Origin: Octopus sinensis
Lineage: Eukaryota
Reading direction: 5' to 3'
NCBI RefSeq assembly: GCF_006345805.1
Contig: NC_043008.1
Location: 76,136,001 to 76,200,000, forward strand
Length of the DNA stretch: 64,000 nucleotides
Position 1 is the first letter of the stretch. Every line of letters starts with the position of its first letter. The position numbers and the translations under genes were made by a program. Of the stretch, positions 3,251 through 58,148 are shown in pieces. Under the pieces are notes generated by a model. The model did not search any database and had not been told where the DNA came from. It saw only the letters and a program-made list of their open reading frames with translations.

Positions 3251-3668
3251 CTGATCTTTACTGATTGGAATTCTTATCATGTACAGTGTTTTCGCTTGGC
3301 TTAAAAGATGATCTACAGCAAATATTCTGCTCAATACCTCAGATTTGCTTGTCACTTGTTTGACCTTAACCAGTTGAGCGTGTCCTTTGGTGGCTGACGA
3401 TATGTATATCTCTGATCACGAGCAGAAGTAATGGGGAAGCATCGTAGCCATGTGCTGAGAGGAATTCTTTGCAGTTTGCATAATTCATCTCTGAAAACAT
3501 GGGCGTTTCATTCACAATCCTCAAAGAACCCTTATTCAAGGACCATTTGAGCGGGATGGGCTACTCGACCTGAAGAAAATTCTAACTCGGCCGCACCTGC
3601 AAGGTCATACGCTTTTTGATATGAGATCACCATGTCGCGCACATATGGTCGTGATGCATGTTCCTGGT
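3251..3668. mobile_element. Interspersed non-coding repeat (family C), truncated copy
   Basis: Matches the copies at 44587-45018 and 55728-56284 (tacagcaaatattctgctcaatac...ggctgacgatatg...ctgatcacgagcagaagta). Confidence 0.85.
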
Positions 3669-3992
3669 AAATCGACTGCTACTTAATTTATTGACCCCGA
3701 AAGAACGAAATGCAAAGTCGACCTTGGCGGAATTTAAACTAGAACGTAGCGGTAGACGAAATACGTATTTCTTTACTGCCCACAAGGGGCTACACACAGA
3801 GGGGTCAAGCAAGGACAGACAAACGGATTAAGTCGATTATATCGACCCCAGTGCGTAACTGGTACTTAATTTATCGACCCCGAAAGGATGAAAGGTAAAG
3901 TCGACCTCGGCGGAATTTGAACTCAGAACGTAACGGCAGACGAAATACCGCTAAGTATTTTGCCCAGGTTCCTAACGATCCTGCCAACTCAC
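3669..3992 (-). mobile_element. tRNA-derived SINE family A, dimeric
   Basis: On the minus strand: head with gttctgagttcaaattccgccgaggtcgac (B-box-like), body, tail ending ccccttgtgggcagtaaagaaata at 3766, then a second headless body. Confidence 0.85.
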
Positions 3993-28131: not shown

Positions 28132-28852
28132 ATATATATTACAATGCATTCACTTGGGCGGTATATCATTTCTGCAATTGATATAATGCCAATACATTTT
28201 TGTCGGTAACTATTCAACCACATTTTGAATAGTGGCGCCAATTTTGCGTGAGTGTATAAGACGAGATTTCTTGAGTTCGATTAAGTGTAGGGAATCAATT
28301 ATCCAGCGTCTGTTGTATTGATCGTTTCCTGTACAGTATCTTGTTAGGTGGACTATCTTGTGCTGACATTTTGTACTGTTCAGTAATTACAACATAGTTA
28401 ATAAAGTTTTACACAATTATAGAATTGATACAGCACTCGAATGATTTTATTGTTTTATATATATAGATAAGATACAGTGTATATCGTGGGGATATTGTAT
28501 GTGATACTCTATATTACAATATTTGCGTTGATATGCATTTATTTATATTAGGCGCGCGTGCGTACTAGAATGTTGTATACGAATGTTGCATGGGAGTAAC
28601 TGTATGTGAAAAACATACGTGTGTTTGTATGTGTGTACATATGTGTGTACATGTGTGTGTATACAACGCGTTCATTGCACTAGTCAGTAGAGATTTCCCT
28701 TTACAAAGCTCGTTTTAGACTGGAATTTTAGTGCTATTTGCAATATATAATATATATATATATAGCTATATTGCTCTCTTCTCACTTTTTGCGCATATAT
28801 CTATGTTTATATACACAAACTCATGCATACACACACACAAACACACACAAAC

Positions 28853-28890
<38 letters not shown>

Positions 28891-28955
28891 TACATGCACA
28901 CATTATTTATATTACTTACATTTCATGGATAATTGTAATCATCTTGTTTGTTGTT

Positions 28956-29001
28956 AACACAAAGTTTCCGCTGATATACCATCCAGCCTTCATCAGGTGT
29001 C
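28956..29001 (-). ncRNA. Minimal type I hammerhead fold
   Basis: Minus strand: GACAC-CUGAUGA-A-GGCUG-gaugguauau-CAGCG-GAAAC-UUU-GUGUU. Core intact; one stem II mismatch. Confidence 0.72.
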
Positions 29002-29076
29002 TTTATGAAATTTCAAACCTGGGTTCTCATCCTAAGGTATTTTTCGATTTTATTATTATTATTATTATTATTATTA

Positions 29077-29128
<52 letters not shown>

Positions 29129-29158
29129 CTTACTGTCTGCAATCGAACTCGGAATCTT

Positions 29159-29230
29159 GGGCATATGGCGTGGTGGTTAAGACCGAGGGCTACTAACACC
29201 AAGATTCTGAGTTCGATTCCCGGCAGTGAG

Positions 29231-29233
<3 letters not shown>
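29159..29233 (+). promoter_or_regulatory. tRNA-like internal Pol III promoter (A and B boxes)
   Basis: A-box-like tggcgtggtgg 29166-29176, anticodon-loop-like ctactaa, B-box-like agttcgattcc 29210-29220. Confidence 0.7.
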
Positions 29234-29285
<52 letters not shown>

Positions 29286-29333
29286 TCGAAAAATACCTTA
29301 GGAATGAGAACCCAGGTTCGAAATTTCCCCCAA

Positions 29334-29379
29334 GACACCTGATGAAGTCTGGATGGTATATCAGCCTAAAAGTTACGTT
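29334..29379 (+). ncRNA. Minimal hammerhead fold, probably inactivated
   Basis: GACAC-CUGAUGA-A-GUCUG-loop-CAGCC-UAAAA-GUU-ACGUU. GAAA is mutated to UAAA. Homologous to 28956-29001. Confidence 0.6.
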
Positions 29380-29935
29380 AACAACAAACAAGATGAGAAC
29401 AAATATTCGTCAAATGTAAATAATGTATATAATTCCTCATCTCTTAAATATAGAACTGTATACATACACACACCTGAGGAAAATATAGTCGTGTACATGT
29501 ATGCTTAAGTGTATGCTAACTTATTTACACATTCGTGCGAATCCTGTACCTTACGCTGTGATTAGCCTCATCTATATATGAATTGCCTATAGATTTTGGA
29601 GAAACACTCGGATAGTATATCAATTCGAAAAGTGTGTGATTATGTATTATTTATGGTAGTAACCATGGATTATCAAACCTGAATTCTGCAACTGTTTCCC
29701 TTCACTTAATTTTCCAGCCTTTTTATTTCATATCATCCTTATAAGAAAACAATGTTTCCATTATCATCTGAAATATGATTATATAAATGCGAGTATATTC
29801 GCATGAAACCATTCGTATCATATTCACAGAACTCTTCTTTCAAATGCAAATTATTCATTCATTAAAGTTGCACTGATGTCATTCGTTAAGCGTGTTACTA
29901 GCGTGTTCATCCACAAGCATACACACACACACACA

Positions 29936-30212
29936 CATCATCATCATTGTTCGACCGTGGTCCAGACAATGGAATTTACCATGTTGCGCCAGACTTCACG
30001 GTCCATCATAGCATTACGGAGGTCCTGTTGCTGGATGCCTGTATCCCTGGAGATTACATCAGGGTAGGAGAGTGTGCGCCCTCTGGTGTTGCGAGTAGAT
30101 TGCTTCCAGAGGAGAAGAGTAGAAATTACTTCTTTTTCAGCTCTACAACAATGTCCAGCAAACTGGACTCTCCTACCCTTCACAAGAGATGACACAGGTG
30201 GTAATTTCCCAT
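29936..30212 (-). mobile_element. RTE-clade LINE 3' end
   Basis: RRVQFAGHCCRA...LLWK...SYPDVISRDTG...MMDREVWR, followed by a short (TGA)n tail. Confidence 0.82.
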
Positions 30213-30214
30213 AT

Positions 30215-30248
<34 letters not shown>

Positions 30249-31739
30249 ATATATTATATATATATATATATAAACACGCACGTAAAGAGGAGATAAAATG
30301 TGTATGTGATGTGAGTGGAGGAAAATTTTTTTCGAATGAACAACCTGGAATTATAAACAGTATATTATTAAAAGTTCACAAATCTTTGTAAATGCAACAA
30401 TACTTCCAATATTCCCCTACAATATACAATAAACCCATTCTGTATACGTACACACCAATGAATATAAAAGTACATGGGTAATATGGCTGAGTAGAAGCAA
30501 ACCTGAAGTAAATCTACGTGTATTAGAATATTTTGTAGACTTGTATAAATGTCTCTCGCCCACTATGTATATGCGTATATATGTACTCATACCTACCGAT
30601 GTGGGCAAACATGCATACACACACACACACACGTACGTATCTAAATGTACAAATGAGCATGTGTTGTATCTACAACATAATTTGTCATGACCTGATGGCA
30701 TTTACTTAAGCAATAGTTGCCTAAAGAAGATAATATAATACCTCTAATGTAATTATATCAAATATCAACGAAATATAAACGTTTGGGATTGAGAAATTGA
30801 ATGATAAATTGAATAATTAACTTGCAATATTTGAAGACATTTGTGTCTTTCTTTATTAACATAATATTTGTGGAAACTGATGGGAATATATTTCGAGGTA
30901 TCATAGAATATTTTAGAAAGAACAAATATACATATACACATTTTACCAACACTACTTTATTTGATGAATATTTCAGATAGTCATTCTTATATATGTATAA
31001 TATATTGGTATATATACATATGCATACATGCATACATACATACATATACACACACAGGCATATATATACACATATATACATACATGTATACACACACACA
31101 CATACACCTATATGCGTGTGTATAGGCGACTAGGGTAACTGAATGTACAATTCAACGCGGTAACTGAGCAATCGCCCATTAGTTGAACATCATCGGGCAA
31201 ACTTAGCTGTATTGTAAGCTTGGTTCTCATTGGTTGTGGCAGATCACGTGAAGTCCGCAATTAAAGCTGCATATGGCTGAGTTTCTTGTCAATGTAGACG
31301 TAGACATCTGATCGAAAAAAGTAATTATGCTTCTGCGTATGAAATTCCGAGTAATAAGCATTTGTTTAACTAGTGATCATCTACACACGAACATATACAC
31401 GCGTGCACACAGAAACATTCATAGCTACGGATGTTTCTATGTTAGTCCCGGACTTCCTTTGTTTTTACACTGATTTAAACGTGGTGGTTTGATGTATTAT
31501 TTATTCACGAAATTTGCTATTTGACGAAAGGAAATCGATAAATTAAGAACAGCAATTAAACATTTTATCGACAAAAACTACTGAAGCAAGACCTTCGCAT
31601 GGCCGTAATCCTATACTTAGTAAAAGAATGAAAGAACGTATGGTGCTTGTATGAAATATTTCTTCTGAATATCACATGTGATATTAGCAAGTATCCATTG
31701 TTACCGACCCACTTATGTTCACGGCAATCAATCGAAGAA

Positions 31740-44174: not shown

Positions 44175-45300
44175 AAAGACAGGCATATTTTCAAGGGGAG
44201 ATAATAAAGAAGTTCTTAAGGCCTTCTGTCATGCCATTGCACCTACCTGAAAAACTCTGATGACTGGAAGTTAAAACTTCTCTTAAAGCACGAAAACAAG
44301 AAATCATCATCCTCAGTAACAAAACGGGCAAAGAAATATCTAAATGAATTTCAAATTCAGCAAATACCAGAAGTAGACGTACAGGAAACAAGCACAGAAA
44401 AAAGGGCATATGAAAACCCGTGCTAAAGTTGCTGCTTTAGATATTCTTACCGATAAATTGCAATAAAAACCTCTCAATTCAAAAGGGAGCTAATAAATCC
44501 GATGTTGACAAGGCACTTACCCATCAATGGTTAGAGTCTTCTGGCTTAAAATCGGAAACAGAAGGGTTTATCAGAGCAGCCCAAAGTGGGCTATAGCAAA
44601 TATTCTGCCCAATACCACAGATATGTTTGTCAGTTGTTTGATCTTAACCATCTGAGCATGCCCATTAGTGACTGACAATATGTGCAATTCTGATCACGAG
44701 CAGAGGTAGTGGGGGTACATCATAGCCATGTGACGAGAGGAATTCTTTTGGGATTCGATAATTCACTCTAGGAAACATGGGTGATTCATTCAACATCCTT
44801 AAACAACCTTTATTCAAGGAACCTTTGTACGTGTGGGTTACTCGACCATAGGAAAATTGTAAATGTGCCCACATGCAATCTCATGCGCTGTTTATCTTGA
44901 TATTAGATCATCATGTCGCGCACATATGTTTGTGATACATGAGCCTCATGATTGGTATACACGGCTTCATATTTTTTACTACCGTGTCACTTTGTTTGCA
45001 TGCATATCACTCTCACTCAATAATAATAGTAATAATAAGGTCTTGTCCTTCACCCATCCTACGACGCTGGGTGTTTCTCGACAAGTGATTGTAATAAACA
45101 TGCAGAATAATTATAATAATGGAATAAAAAATATGCGGGGCCTTAAACCAAAGACTCTTCTTGTTATTGTATGTGCCCTATGTATTAGAAAAATGGGATG
45201 CCAGAAACATATTGCAACATCCCAAGAAAACCATGTCTCACGGAAATGCAAAATATTGTCCTGACATGTACTGCCCACATCCTTAGTAAAACCCTGTTAA
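44175..45300 (+). mobile_element. Decayed R4/Dong-like copy interrupted by family C
   Basis: Starts after (AAT)n; GIFQG-like, QWLESSGLKSETEGFIRAAQ up to 44586, resumes ~45120 and ends EMQNIVLTCTAHILSKTL. Confidence 0.7.
44587..45018. mobile_element. Family C repeat
   Basis: Matches 55728-56284; followed by (AAT)n. Confidence 0.9.
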
Positions 45301-55233: not shown

Positions 55234-55645
55234 TCAATACCACAGATTTGCTTGTCAGTTGTTTGACCGAAACCAGTTGAGCATCTCCCTTAGTGGCTGA
55301 CGATATGGGCATCTCTGATCACGAGCAGAAGTAGTTGGGGAGTATCATAGCCCTGTGTTAAGAGGGATTCTTTGGGGTTTGAATAATACACCTCTGGAAA
55401 CATGGGTGTTTCGTTCAACATCCTTAAACAACCCTTATTCAAGGACCTTTTGAGCGGGATGGCTACTCGACCAGAAAAAAATTCTAACTGAGCCCTACCT
55501 GCAAGGCCATGCACTGCTTAATTTGCACATATGGTTGTGATGCATGTGCCTGGTGTAACCTTATAAGACAGGTAGTCATGATGGGTATACTGGGCTTCGT
55601 ATATTTTACTCTAGTGTCACTTTGATGGCATGCCCTGCTCTCTCA

Positions 55646-55648
<3 letters not shown>
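55234..55648. mobile_element. Family C repeat, partial
   Basis: Matches the adjacent full copy; ends in (AAT)n 55649-55727. Confidence 0.9.
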
Positions 55649-55727
<79 letters not shown>

Positions 55728-55730
<3 letters not shown>

Positions 55731-56284
55731 GCCCTGATGCAGTATCAGGCAGTGGCTCTCATGGCTTCTGATCTTAACTGATTGAAAGTGTTATCATGTA
55801 CATTGTTTTGTCTTGGTATAAAAGATGGGCTACAGCAAATATTCTGCTCAATACCACAGATTTGCTTGTCAGTTGTTTGACCTTAACCAGTTGAGCATGT
55901 CCCTTAGTGGCTGACGATATGCGCATCTCTGATCACGAGCAGAAGTAGTGGGGGAGCATCATAGCCATGTGTTGAGAGGGATTCTTTGGGGTTTGAATAG
56001 TTCACCTCTGGAAACATGGGTGGTTCTTTCAACATCCTTAAACAACCCTTATTCAGGGACCTTTTGAGCGGGATGGGCTACTCAACCTGAAGAAAATTCT
56101 AACTGGGCCCCACCTGCAAGGTCATGTGCTGTTTATCTTGATATGAGATCACCATGTCGCGCACATATGGTTGTGATGCATGTGCCTGGTGTACCTTTAT
56201 CAGACGGGTAGTCATGATGGGTATATTGGGCTTCGTATATTTTACCCCAGTGTCACTTTGATGGCATGCACAGCTCTCTCACTC
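55728..56284. mobile_element. Family C repeat, apparently full length (~557 bp)
   Basis: aatgccctgatgcag...gctctctcactc, with (AAT)n on both sides. Confidence 0.9.
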
Positions 56285-56299
56285 AATAATAATAATAAT

Positions 56300-57756: not shown

Positions 57757-58148
57757 TTCTTTTCTACTCTAGGCACAATGCACGAAAATTTTGGGAAGGG
57801 TGCCTGTCGATTAGATCGACCCAGTACGCAAATGGTATTTAATTTATCGACCCTGAAAGGATGAAAGGAAAAGTCTACCTCGGCGGAATTTGAACTCAGA
57901 ACGTAGCGGCAGACAAAATACCTATTTCTTTACTACCCACAAGGGGCCAAACACAGAAAAGACAAACAAGGACAGACAAACGGATTAAGTCGATTATATC
58001 GACCTCAGTGCGTAACTGGTACTTATTTAATCGACCCCGAAATGATGAAAGGCAAAGTTGACCTCGGTGGAATTTGAACTCGAAACGTAGCGGCAGGCGA
58101 CATATTGCTAAGCATTTCGCCCGGCGTGCTAACGATTCTGCCAGCTCA
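57757..58148 (-). mobile_element. SINE family A, dimeric
   Basis: Same monomer junction as 3669-3992 (gacaaaatacc|tatttctttactacccacaagggg). Confidence 0.88.

Follow-up and report, generated by a model that had tools for sequence, protein, structure and literature searches.

What kind of element leaves a palindrome in which a tRNA-like head, a microsatellite and a hammerhead module face a truncated mirror image of themselves, and how is such an element copied? We analysed a locus that raises this question within a 64,000-nucleotide stretch of Octopus sinensis contig NC_043008.1 (hereafter the window), where the original prediction had placed a candidate SINE–retrozyme hybrid at 28900–29427. 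Our analysis gives us good confidence that positions 28902–29459 of the window are a single retrotransposition event, in which the 3′-terminal unit of an O. sinensis Penelope-like element (PLE) family was inserted. Judged by the tRNA-like promoter boxes and the minimal hammerhead that it carries, the unit is a genuine mobile element, yet one of a largely known kind, and its copies should be annotated under PLEs rather than as unclassified SINEs.

In the window insertion, one unit is present twice in inverted orientation; it comprises a tRNA-like head with A and B boxes, (AAT)n and a body of about 150 bp, and a 12-bp target-site duplication (TSD) lies outside the pair. Every feature of the predicted arrangement is present, including the mirrored copy with its truncated head; the element itself thus stood, whereas its end had to be moved to 29459/60, a 35-nt tail and the TSD having been missed. 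The left TSD, ATACATGCACAC (28890–28901), matches the right TSD, ATACATACACAC (29460–29471), at 11 of 12 positions, the pair reading ATACAT[G/A]CACAC with one variable position, and the first A of the right TSD doubles as the last base of the tail. On the reverse strand, the left arm comprises a body at 28901–29052 that ends in the TAAATAATG repeat without the 35-nt tail (blastn to consensus 1–160, 88% identity; nhmmer E = 6.6e-45) and contains a decayed minimal hammerhead at 28955–29001, the reverse complement of which is GACACCTGATGAAGGCTGGATGGTATATCAGCGGAAACTTTGTGTT. There follow (ATT)n at 29053–29125, which is the internal (AAT)n microsatellite as judged by sequence reading and inverted-repeat alignment, and a 5′-truncated head at 29126–29160 that retains the B-box half alone (blastn to head positions 40–87, 92% identity); this head is cut at consensus position 40 and joins the right head through GG microhomology. 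On the forward strand, the right arm has a complete head at 29159–29233 (blastn to head positions 1–87, 92% identity), (AAT)n at 29234–29283 (sequence reading), a body at 29284–29425 that again ends in the TAAATAATG repeat (blastn to consensus 1–194, 90% identity; nhmmer E = 4.6e-57) with a decayed minimal hammerhead at 29334–29379 reading GACACCTGATGAAGTCTGGATGGTATATCAGCCTAAAAGTTACGTT, and the 35-nt tail at 29426–29460, which agrees with the consensus TACATAATTCCTCATCTCTTAAATATAGAACTGTA and is present at this end of the element alone. Because both ribozymes and one head are broken, the window copy is old and dead.

A 558-bp near-palindrome with long inverted arms could also be an assembly fold-back artefact, or a DNA foldback or MITE with terminal inverted repeats, explanations to which we assign next to no probability. 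The arms are diverged and asymmetric: the outer parts (28902–29003 and 29332–29433, 102 nt) are 84% complementary and the inner parts (29077–29160 and 29199–29282, 84 nt) 94% complementary, one head is truncated and one end bears a tail. Perfect head-to-head centres of the form ACTACGCCATATGCCC-NN-GGGCATATGGCGTAGT, with a 2-nt spacer, occur at 943 loci in the genome compared with 13 for a 3-nt spacer, so that at least 943 loci share a common centre in different flanks. TSDs vary in length from 10 to 13 bp, and monomers and ORF-linked copies exist; the symmetric terminal inverted repeats and fixed-length TSD of a MITE or foldback element were not found in this family. With 943 perfect centres, diverged arms and a TSD that bounds the whole pair, the palindrome is real. 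Read-through of the pair is predicted to give the long double-stranded RNA hairpin that had been proposed (−288 kcal/mol, z = −30).

Among the first 30 loci that we fetched, a sample biased toward copies resembling the window copy, 18 are dimers. At least 13 of these 18 have one 10–13-bp TSD around the whole pair, and in every dimer with both outer ends readable the tail stands at exactly one end. The sample also includes one partial tandem (L024) and a monomer (L026), and the 35-nt tail has 11,486 copies in the genome at up to three mismatches. PLE insertions are characterized by 5′ truncation, an inverted 5′-truncated partner, a 30–40-bp tail at one end and partial tandems (Craig et al. 2021, PMC8557442), and the octopus loci have this architecture. 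We thereby demonstrate that new copies of the unit arise by target-primed reverse transcription, which leaves 10–13-bp TSDs, and that integration very often yields two inverted copies with their 5′ ends joined, one often 5′-truncated and with the tail at exactly one outer end. Within dimers, the arms share private variants only weakly (18 versus 8.2 expected, P about 0.04), and for this reason snap-back is not separable from twin priming. A T-run in the TSD, considered as a terminator beside the tail, was inconsistent across loci and was rejected.

The original prediction had proposed a free-standing hybrid mobilized by a PLE. The tie proved more direct, as the unit itself forms a PLE 3′ UTR. 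In several copies (L027/L070, L071, L073 and L019), the head, (AAT)n and hammerhead module follow an ORF that probably encodes a reverse transcriptase (RT) and a CxC/GIY-YIG-like endonuclease, with the stop codon about 30 nt 5′ of the head, and in L021 ORF-end sequence is present in both arms. The ORF ends with ...GIADHVWKNG..LWDEVK..REHH.K.RKLKEAA.MLGHNNLLSRP..MNSIWEPVLRKDRRILDL and the stop codon (L070/L027, L071, L073 and L019). The stop lies about 190–260 nt 5′ of the ribozyme in L070, L071 and the ENA-assembly copies that retain the ribozyme, and L073 has a version of the region with a deletion; the hammerhead thus occupies the PLE 3′ end. Pfam RVT_1 is present in homologues (59–67% identity), on the N-terminal side of the matched region. 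The source of one homologue calls it a GIY-YIG endonuclease, and another is an O. sinensis protein. The predicted endonuclease has the motif VYSIPCSCGRLYKGET..R..EH, and hhalign aligned it to Pfam-positive PLE endonucleases over the GIY..YIG core (E = 9.8e-5, probability 58%). Pfam GIY-YIG itself gave no match to this unit-linked endonuclease, and the module was absent by blastn and nhmmer from 30 PLE loci taken from a Pfam GIY-YIG search and considered as the partner. That search missed the true partner because its endonuclease is too divergent for the model; the partner was recognized through the ORF 5′ of the head in L027. Among 150 scored copies there was no intact full-length ORF, the longest open frame being 551 amino acids. 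ENA-assembly copies have the stop, A/B-box segment, spacer, hammerhead and short 3′ end in the same order with (AAT)n absent, and in a short Logan contig the A/B-box segment is likewise present, the contig ending before the hammerhead region.

This order also bears on whether the head and the hammerhead are nested but unrelated, a tRNA-SINE with an (AAT)n tail lying beside a different, (AAT)n-targeting hammerhead element. An unrelated repeat of about 650 bp that ends in (AAT)n does sit in the element's microsatellite in five loci (L006, L008, L009, L019 and L029), and since it inserted there, (AAT)n is a target for something in the octopus genome. Nesting is nevertheless very improbable. TSDs surround head and module jointly, and head, spacer and hammerhead succeed the PLE ORF in that order, also in the ENA-assembly copies, which lack any (AAT)n. 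The predicted linkage of head and module held in about 22 of 29 other copies, and no orphan heads were seen in about 320 kb.

The ribozyme that had been pieced together from the two window copies (GACAC-CUGAUGA-A-GGCUG..CAGCC-GAAAC-GUU-GUGUU) is exactly the family consensus. In full, the consensus reads GACAC-CUGAUGA-A-GGCUGG-AGGGUAUA-UCAGCC-GAA-ACGU-U-GUGUU, with a helix I of 5 bp and a helix II of 6 bp, and the minimum-free-energy fold predicted for its 63 nt contains both helices. The hammerhead core (C3U4G5A6N7G8A9, G12A13A14, A15.1–U16.1 and H17) is complete in the consensus as CUGAUGA...GAAAC-GU-U and in neither window copy. On the right, G12 is changed to T, helix II has a G-to-T change, ACGU is broken and helix III/I is altered; on the left, C11.1>G and G16.2>T abolish the G10.1–C11.1 pair and the ACGU palindrome, and the copy does not satisfy our hammerhead descriptor. 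PLE minimal hammerheads lack helix III and loop 3, have one unpaired nucleotide between 9 and 10.1, a G10.1–C11.1 pair and a palindromic 15.2–16.2, and combine a short helix I with a long helix II (Cervera & de la Pena 2014, PMC4209133); the octopus consensus has 4 of the 4 minimal-hammerhead features of that study. As it has no helix III loop, two RNAs would have to pair through ACGU.

None of the Rfam hammerhead models (Hammerhead_1, Hammerhead_3, HH9, HH10 and II) matched the window at E ≤ 10 or at the gathering threshold, and none matched at E ≤ 1 in 14 loci with consensus-like copies or in relatives from other sequence sets. We infer that Rfam misses the ribozyme since its models appear to need helix III, which is absent from the motif. 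Because Rfam and ARAGORN backed neither a hammerhead nor a tRNA, we wrote our own minimal-hammerhead descriptor and ran it with dinucleotide-shuffle controls on 319 kb of fetched sequence. It matched 27 times compared with about 0.1 in the shuffles, which excludes chance, and its sole other clear matches were the 3′ ends of bona fide PLEs. In the O. sinensis genome, a 41-mer of the ribozyme has 975 exact copies and 13,259 at up to three mismatches, and its CpG-free half has 18,259; the reversed control gave 0 in each case. In the ENA-assembly copies the ribozyme core departs at N7 alone, and one helix II pair is altered on both sides.

A dimer-dependent hammerhead would suit a retrozyme or Sm-alpha type of element, in which tandem units yield hammerhead-cut, unit-length and possibly circular RNAs for rolling-circle reverse transcription. 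Animal retrozymes have been proposed to depend on PLEs (bioRxiv 10.64898/2026.07.22.740005), and Sm-alpha is a Pol III-transcribed element that bears a hammerhead (PMC6765202). We give this explanation very little credence for the octopus family, the copies of which have fixed ends, the head on one side and the TAAATAATG repeat or tail on the other, rather than ends at GUU/G, and the ribozyme of which has no Rfam Hammerhead_1 match. In the palindrome the two ribozymes lie on opposite strands and therefore could not work together in a single transcript. The copies, scattered as single units or inverted pairs, have fixed ends, and hammerhead-delimited tandem arrays, which a retrozyme hybrid would imply, were not found among them. 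A 319-bp same-strand close pair that resembled a retrozyme tandem is a segmental duplication with its flanks included, and two exact ribozymes 5 kb apart, also considered as the terminal repeats of one full-length PLE, belong to two dimers that inserted independently. The further proposal that the ribozyme defines the RNA end does not fit copies that begin at the head and run 60–95 nt past the predicted cleavage site; since copy ends differ from the cleavage site and ribozyme-delimited tandem arrays are absent, neither that proposal nor the term retrozyme is supported. The hammerhead would instead have been inherited from the PLE 3′ end without a role in setting the ends of the copied RNA, and processing or recognition of PLE RNA would be its likelier role.

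The 5′ end of the copies coincides with the tRNA-like head. In the right window copy, tRNA position +1 falls at about 29159, the A box at 29166–29176 (TGGCGTGGTGG) has one mismatch to TRGCNNAGTGG and the B box at 29210–29220 is AGTTCGATTCC. The consensus has an exact A box, TGGCGTAGTGG, at head positions 8–18 and a B box, AGTTCGATTCC, that agrees at 10 of 11 positions; the two boxes start 44 nt apart, matching tRNA positions 8 and 52, and the A and B boxes thus have the spacing seen in tRNA-derived SINEs. The corresponding boxes in the ENA-assembly copies are TGGCGTAACGG and GGTTCAATCCT. Recognizable tRNA descent was detected neither by ARAGORN, which found no tRNA in the window and none in the consensus even at relaxed settings, nor by the Rfam tRNA model in the window (E ≤ 10), in consensus-like loci (E ≤ 1) or in relatives from other sequence sets. 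The consensus sense strand is free of T4, and the first TTTT 3′ of the window head is indeed at 29594, as had been noted. At up to three mismatches, the genome contains 13,259 copies of the ribozyme 41-mer, 10,721 of a mid-head sequence and 1,688 of a sequence crossing into the upstream UTR, so that 19% of copies are lost across about 170 nt and then 84% across about 65 nt, a jump of about 20-fold per nucleotide exactly at the head. In about 84% of head-reaching copies the end lies at a mini-palindrome, GCCC-AC-GGGC, located 6 nt 5′ of tRNA +1. Like a tRNA-derived SINE, the short form therefore has a discrete promoter-side 5′ end and a 3′ end in common with an autonomous partner, that 3′ end being the partner's UTR. 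One copy was present in a random genome sample of 55 kb.

On sequence grounds, the A and B boxes, the T4-free sense strand and the sharp 5′ end 6 nt before +1 make Pol III transcription from the head plausible, and the 5′-end excess fits a short, head-initiated, SINE-like RNA. Processing of a long PLE RNA or an effect of the RT could be an alternative source of the pile-up. On that account, which we consider rather unlikely, the short copies derive from long Pol II transcripts of the PLE by ordinary 5′ truncation, the head has no promoter function, and the pile-up reflects either RNase P-like cleavage at a tRNA-like fold in the UTR or stalling or switching of the RT at the mini-palindrome. PLE insertions are known to be heavily 5′-truncated with inverted truncated partners (PMC8557442), breakpoints within the octopus head and microsatellite are common, 1,688 copies reach upstream of the head, and more than one sequence set shows the head within the UTR of the autonomous element. 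Simple truncation sits poorly with the abrupt loss of copies exactly at the head, however, and a hairpin of 4 bp would offer an RT little resistance. RNase P would be expected to cut at +1, but the dimer centres and monomer L026 retain the native GCCC-AC 5′ of +1, and the head neither folds nor scores as a tRNA.

Initiation at the head is the reading that we develop into a mechanism. From 5′ to 3′, the unit comprises the GCCC-AC-GGGC mini-palindrome, a tRNA-derived-looking A/B-box segment of about 75 nt, (AAT)n(AAC)n, a body of about 150 nt with the PLE-type minimal hammerhead, one to four copies of TAAATAATG and, in some copies, the 35-nt tail; where copies are longer, this unit forms the 3′ UTR after the putative RT/CxC-GIY-YIG-like ORF. 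Most templates would be short RNAs that start 6 nt 5′ of tRNA +1, the position, 14 nt 5′ of the A box, at which Pol III would be expected to start. This would make the head an internal promoter and the short form a PLE-dependent SINE. The run-off cDNA would have the 3′ end ...GCCCGTGGGC-3′, a self-complementary sequence, and either snap-back of this cDNA or its pairing with a second cDNA may generate the uniform head-to-head centre.

Taken jointly, these features suggest a broader scenario that we put forward tentatively. A cephalopod PLE lineage may maintain the tRNA-like head in its own 3′ UTR as a functional Pol III gene, and this gene may launch a PLE-dependent SINE with more than 18,000 copies. 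Through the self-complementary 5′ end, cDNA snap-back would cause a large share of insertions to be born as perfect hairpins of about 250 bp. The unusually heavy ADAR editing of octopus transcripts would then draw much of its long double-stranded RNA from these hairpins, a source specific to the lineage, and the family would be a natural read-out of the PLE integration mechanism.

No major class of retrotransposons is less well understood than the PLEs, in which the role of the hammerheads and the origin of the inverted and tandem insertions are unexplained. In the octopus family, short insertions that can be dated number in the thousands, and they carry landmarks sharp to the nucleotide, namely the −6 start, the 2-nt centre, the tail at one end and the 10–13-bp TSDs, which constrain models of PLE target-primed reverse transcription. 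If the A and B boxes are functional, the family would clearly exemplify a PLE-dependent SINE born within its partner's UTR, and its palindromes are a countable class of long inverted repeats and candidate ADAR substrates.

Among known systems, the octopus unit resembles the pseudo-LTRs of endonuclease-positive PLEs in having its ribozyme in a terminal region after what is probably an RT and GIY-YIG-type ORF (PMC4209133, PMC8557442), and its insertions resemble those of PLEs in being 5′-truncated, often with an inverted truncated partner, and in carrying a 30–40-bp tail at one end (PMC8557442). Opposite-strand pairs of Schistosoma minimal hammerheads 100–700 bp apart were already noted in the PLE minimal-hammerhead literature (PMC4209133, PMC8557442). 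Unlike described PLEs, the octopus unit has a tRNA-like A/B-box segment between stop codon and ribozyme, a sharp excess of copy starts just 5′ of that segment, an internal (AAT)n and an endonuclease that Pfam GIY-YIG does not score. The searchable literature contains no account of a tRNA-like A/B-box segment in a PLE UTR or of an octopus hammerhead SINE.

Sm-alpha and Sj-alpha of Schistosoma are short, non-coding, hammerhead-bearing and reportedly transcribed by Pol III (Ferbeyre 1998, via PMC6765202 and PMC8490949), and the octopus unit is likewise short, non-coding and hammerhead-bearing. The hammerhead of Sm-alpha is a canonical type I ribozyme of high activity, and the element forms tandem arrays from which units are released by cleavage (PMC6765202, PMC8490949). 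By contrast, the octopus ribozyme is of the helix-III-less PLE type without a match to Rfam Hammerhead_1, and the copies are dispersed singly or as inverted pairs with ends that cleavage does not define. Like animal non-LTR retrozymes, the family is non-autonomous, hammerhead-bearing and probably dependent on PLE enzymes (PMC7229834; Li et al. 2026 preprint). Those retrozymes consist of hammerhead-bounded tandem repeats that yield circular RNAs (Cervera & de la Pena 2020, PMC7229834). The octopus family differs in lacking such arrays and in having fixed, non-ribozyme termini. Classical tRNA-derived SINEs, in the model attributed to Ohshima and Okada, are said to carry a LINE-derived 3′ tail. 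The octopus family has the Pol III-type head, body, 3′ end of an autonomous partner, TSDs and high copy number of such elements. It departs from them in three respects: its partner is a PLE rather than a LINE, its head pre-exists in the partner's UTR rather than having been fused to a copied tail, and integration as inverted pairs is common.

The insertion at 28902-29459 is an inverted pair of one unit. Its right arm (+) has a complete tRNA-like head (+1 at about 29159; A box TGGCGTGGTGG, 29166-29176; B box AGTTCGATTCC, 29210-29220), (AAT)n at 29234-29283, a body of ~140 bp at 29284-29425 and a 35-nt extension, or tail, at 29426-29460. The left arm (-) comprises a body (28901-29052), (ATT)n (29053-29125) and a head truncated at consensus position 40 (29126-29160), and the pair is bracketed by the repeats ATACATGCACAC (28890-28901) and ATACATACACAC (29460-29471). 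The arms are 84-94% complementary, and the hammerhead is mutated in both copies. Direct reading of 28900-29460 bore out how the original prediction had described the sequence, including the mirrored order of head, (AAT)n and body and the lack of TTTT before 29594, the earliest 3′ of the right head; only the tail had been left out. Rfam found neither a hammerhead nor a tRNA in the window element, even at E ≤ 10, and ARAGORN gave zero matches there. Rfam matches to 'mir-297', 'mir-3149' and 'mir-1277' (window 28786-28903 and many loci), all below gathering thresholds, were dismissed as low-complexity false positives on (TG)n/(TA)n microsatellites. An open frame just right of the element (29944-30375, -) appears unrelated to it; its end, ...GRRVQFAGHCCRAEKEVISTLLLWKQSTRNTRGRTLSYPDVISRDTGIQQQDLRNAMMDREVWRNMV, looks like the C-terminal tail of LINE ORFs.

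Searching with the right-hand body yielded more than 3,000 candidates in the 2.72-Gb genome, with 91-94% identity among the 40 scored. A firm family consensus, built from a 50-copy alignment, includes AAGACAC-CTGATGA-A-GGCTGG-AGGGTATA-TCAGCC-GAAAC-GTT-GTGTT, identical to the ribozyme that the original prediction had composed from both window copies. Pattern counts over the whole genome, where each reversed control scored 0, establish a high-copy family: the ribozyme 41-mer has 975 matches without mismatches and 13,259 with up to 3, and the ribozyme's CpG-free 5′ half, of 35 nt, has 18,259 with up to 3. G12 and C15.2 lie in CpG dinucleotides, which decay fast family-wide. Nearly half of the first 100 position-sorted exact ribozyme-half matches fall at about 110.5-116.3 Mb of one contig (C1), against roughly one per 2-3 Mb in the rest of C1 among the matches listed, making this ~6-Mb stretch a possible hotspot of young copies.

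The window palindrome is an integration signature of Penelope-like elements (PLEs), described by Craig et al. (PMC8557442) as heavy 5′ truncation, a 5′-truncated inverted copy adjoining the 5′ end, a tail of 30-40 bp confined to one end, and partial tandems. Head-to-head dimers, whose recurrence the original prediction had left to be checked, occur 18 times in the first 30 fetched loci, a sample skewed to copies resembling the window copy, and a target-site duplication (TSD) of 10-13 bp encloses the whole pair in at least 13 of the 18. Wherever both outer ends are readable, the 35-nt tail (11,486 genome occurrences) lies at exactly one, the other arm stopping within the TAAATAATG repeat; one locus (L024) has an additional partial tandem copy. 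The perfect centre ACTACGCCATATGCCC-NN-GGGCATATGGCGTAGT is found at 943 loci genome-wide, NN being mostly AC/GT or the CpG-decayed form AT. This recurrence, the TSDs around pairs and the one-end tail exclude a fold-back made in assembly, as well as a foldback DNA element, as the source of the palindrome. The window palindrome has a predicted fold of -288 kcal/mol (z = -30), and octopus has abundant dsRNA-forming loci and hyper-editing (PMC5625713); dsRNA formation by head-to-head pairs would be physically reasonable.

In the head alignment, some copies are also alike upstream of the head (...TAAAATTCACTCCATAATTGCCC-AC-GGGCATATGG), and in locus L027 this shared sequence forms an ORF end. The ORF encodes a thumb region of PLE type (..VYRK.TFT..YLNFNSHH..) together with a CxC GIY-YIG-like motif (VYSIPCSCGRLYKGET..R..EH), and stops ~30 nt upstream of the head in L070/L027, L071, L073 and L019; in L021 the ORF-end sequence is present in both arms. 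A first partner search, in 30 PLE loci retrieved via Pfam GIY-YIG, did not find the hammerhead module because that model gives no match to the linked endonuclease, which profile comparison relates to Pfam-positive PLE endonucleases (E = 9.8e-5). In database homologues at 59-67% identity, RVT_1 precedes the matched part; one of them carries the label GIY-YIG endonuclease, and one is recorded as a protein of Octopus sinensis. At least 150 genome copies of the endonuclease region share 74-84% amino-acid identity; no intact ORF was seen among those scored (longest open frame 551 aa), and ORF-linked copies show ~8-9% pairwise nucleotide divergence, similar to short copies. These findings identify the unit as a PLE 3′ UTR; the proposed search for an autonomous PLE sharing the module ended at the ORF upstream of the head.

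Relatives from two other sequence sets share this plan. Copies in ENA ERZ21867824 run from the stop codon through 60-90 nt, an A/B-box segment (TGGCGTAACGG ... GGTTCAATCCT), a spacer and a minimal hammerhead to a final ~60 nt, without (AAT)n; a short Logan contig (SRR25097168) has the A/B-box segment and stops before the hammerhead region. The head is therefore an old part of the PLE lineage's UTR, and a recent nested SINE as its source is rejected on the same evidence. One ENA locus (L074) holds two related PLE ORF copies inverted (1-1258, -; 1501-2850, +), repeating the head-to-head architecture at ORF scale.

Curated Rfam models did not recognise the family hammerhead, in the relatives from other sequence sets either. 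The consensus nevertheless shows the complete feature set given for PLE minimal hammerheads by Cervera & de la Pena (PMC4209133): the catalytic core is complete, a single unpaired base separates positions 9 and 10.1, the G10.1-C11.1 pair is present, 15.2-16.2 is palindromic (ACGU) without loop 3, and helix I is short (5 bp) and helix II long (6 bp). A descriptor coded from these rules matched 27 times in 319 kb of fetched DNA, versus about 0.1 in dinucleotide shuffles; 21 matches are copies of the window family and five are 3′ ends of another, bona fide PLE family with a published U3-A8 core variant. Helices I and II are both predicted when the 63-nt consensus is folded to minimum free energy. 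Between O. sinensis and the ENA relatives the core differs only at N7, a free position, loop 2 is divergent, and a U-A pair of helix II in the former is C-G in the latter, changed on both sides by CpG-type steps via a G-U wobble intermediate. Judged from sequence comparison, this covariation and the kept core give the putative hammerhead modest but real support.

The other PLE family, Pfam GIY-YIG-positive with open frames up to 883 aa, has its minimal hammerhead about 100 nt from the 3′ end, with U3-A8 covariation (TTGATAA-GGTTC..GAACC-GAAAC-ATGT; L038 2362-2402, L047 2365-2405, L051 2210-2253, L053 2363-2403, and L052 2608-2648 (-)); in these loci the element end adjoins (TA)n. Locus L039 holds inverted copies, at 969 (+) and 2311 (-), of a further PLE-type hammerhead (CCTGATGAATGACTGCG...GCAGGCACGAAACGATCGTAGTGT, palindrome ACGATCGT).

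The ribozyme had been predicted to define the RNA end. Copies start at the head and extend 60-95 nt beyond the predicted cleavage site between GUU and G, and cleavage therefore does not delimit the retrotransposed RNA. A palindrome's two ribozymes lie on opposite strands and cannot cooperate within one transcript. Among the close pairs examined we found no hammerhead-bounded tandem arrays: a same-strand pair of 319 bp arose by a duplication that took in the flanks, and a 5-kb pair is two separate dimers. At L068 (C1:197596350-197597550) a ~340-bp tandem duplication holds a 5′-truncated unit copy with its flanking DNA, which makes it segmental and no tandem retroelement. The retrozyme label does not fit.

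Copy number breaks at the head. From the ribozyme 41-mer (13,259) to mid-head (10,721) the loss is only 19%, and crossing into the upstream UTR (1,688) it is 84% over ~65 nt. The break coincides with a native mini-palindrome, GCCC-AC-GGGC, whose first G precedes the tRNA +1 by 6 nt and the A box by 14 nt, roughly the position of an expected Pol III start; monomer L026 has its 5′ end exactly there, adjoining its own TSD, and the sense consensus lacks T4. RNA starting at the mini-palindrome would give a run-off cDNA ending ...GCCCGTGGGC-3′, which could snap back or anneal to another cDNA to form the observed centre with its 2-nt spacer. From the count break, the L026 start, the predicted cDNA end and the absence of T4 we infer, as the best reading, a short RNA initiated at the head, and hence a PLE-dependent SINE; the main rival is that processing of, or template switching on, a long PLE RNA explains the short copies. 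Private variants common to both dimer arms are in weak excess (18 observed versus 8.2 expected, P about 0.04), too little to distinguish snap-back from twin priming.

Two other repeats recur in the window and in fetched loci. One, of ~650 bp and ending in ...GCACTGCTCTCTCACTC(AAT)n, occurs in the window (55649-56295, 55234-55659, 3251-3668, 44583-45028) and, inside the PLE unit's (AAT)n tract, in five loci (L009 821-1470, L019 1699-2295, L029 2101-2753, L008 2215-2842, L006 5-475), as if it targets (AAT)n microsatellites. The other, a very common ~124-bp repeat scattered across the window and fetched loci, precedes the truncated PLE copy in L027 (510-633) and recurs at window 57923-58046 and 3766-3889 and in many other loci.

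Of the original interpretation, the PLE association stands, and the retrozyme and the ribozyme-set RNA ends do not. Less ordinary are the conserved tRNA-like box segment within the PLE's own UTR and the abundant short form starting just upstream of it, a combination of which we found no description in the searchable literature, which does not cover Repbase and Dfam. The mode of the Schistosoma SINE-like hammerhead element Sm-alpha (PMC6765202) does not fit this family, and the element is best filed as a PLE terminal unit that bears a putative minimal hammerhead and was inserted in the inverted form usual for PLEs.
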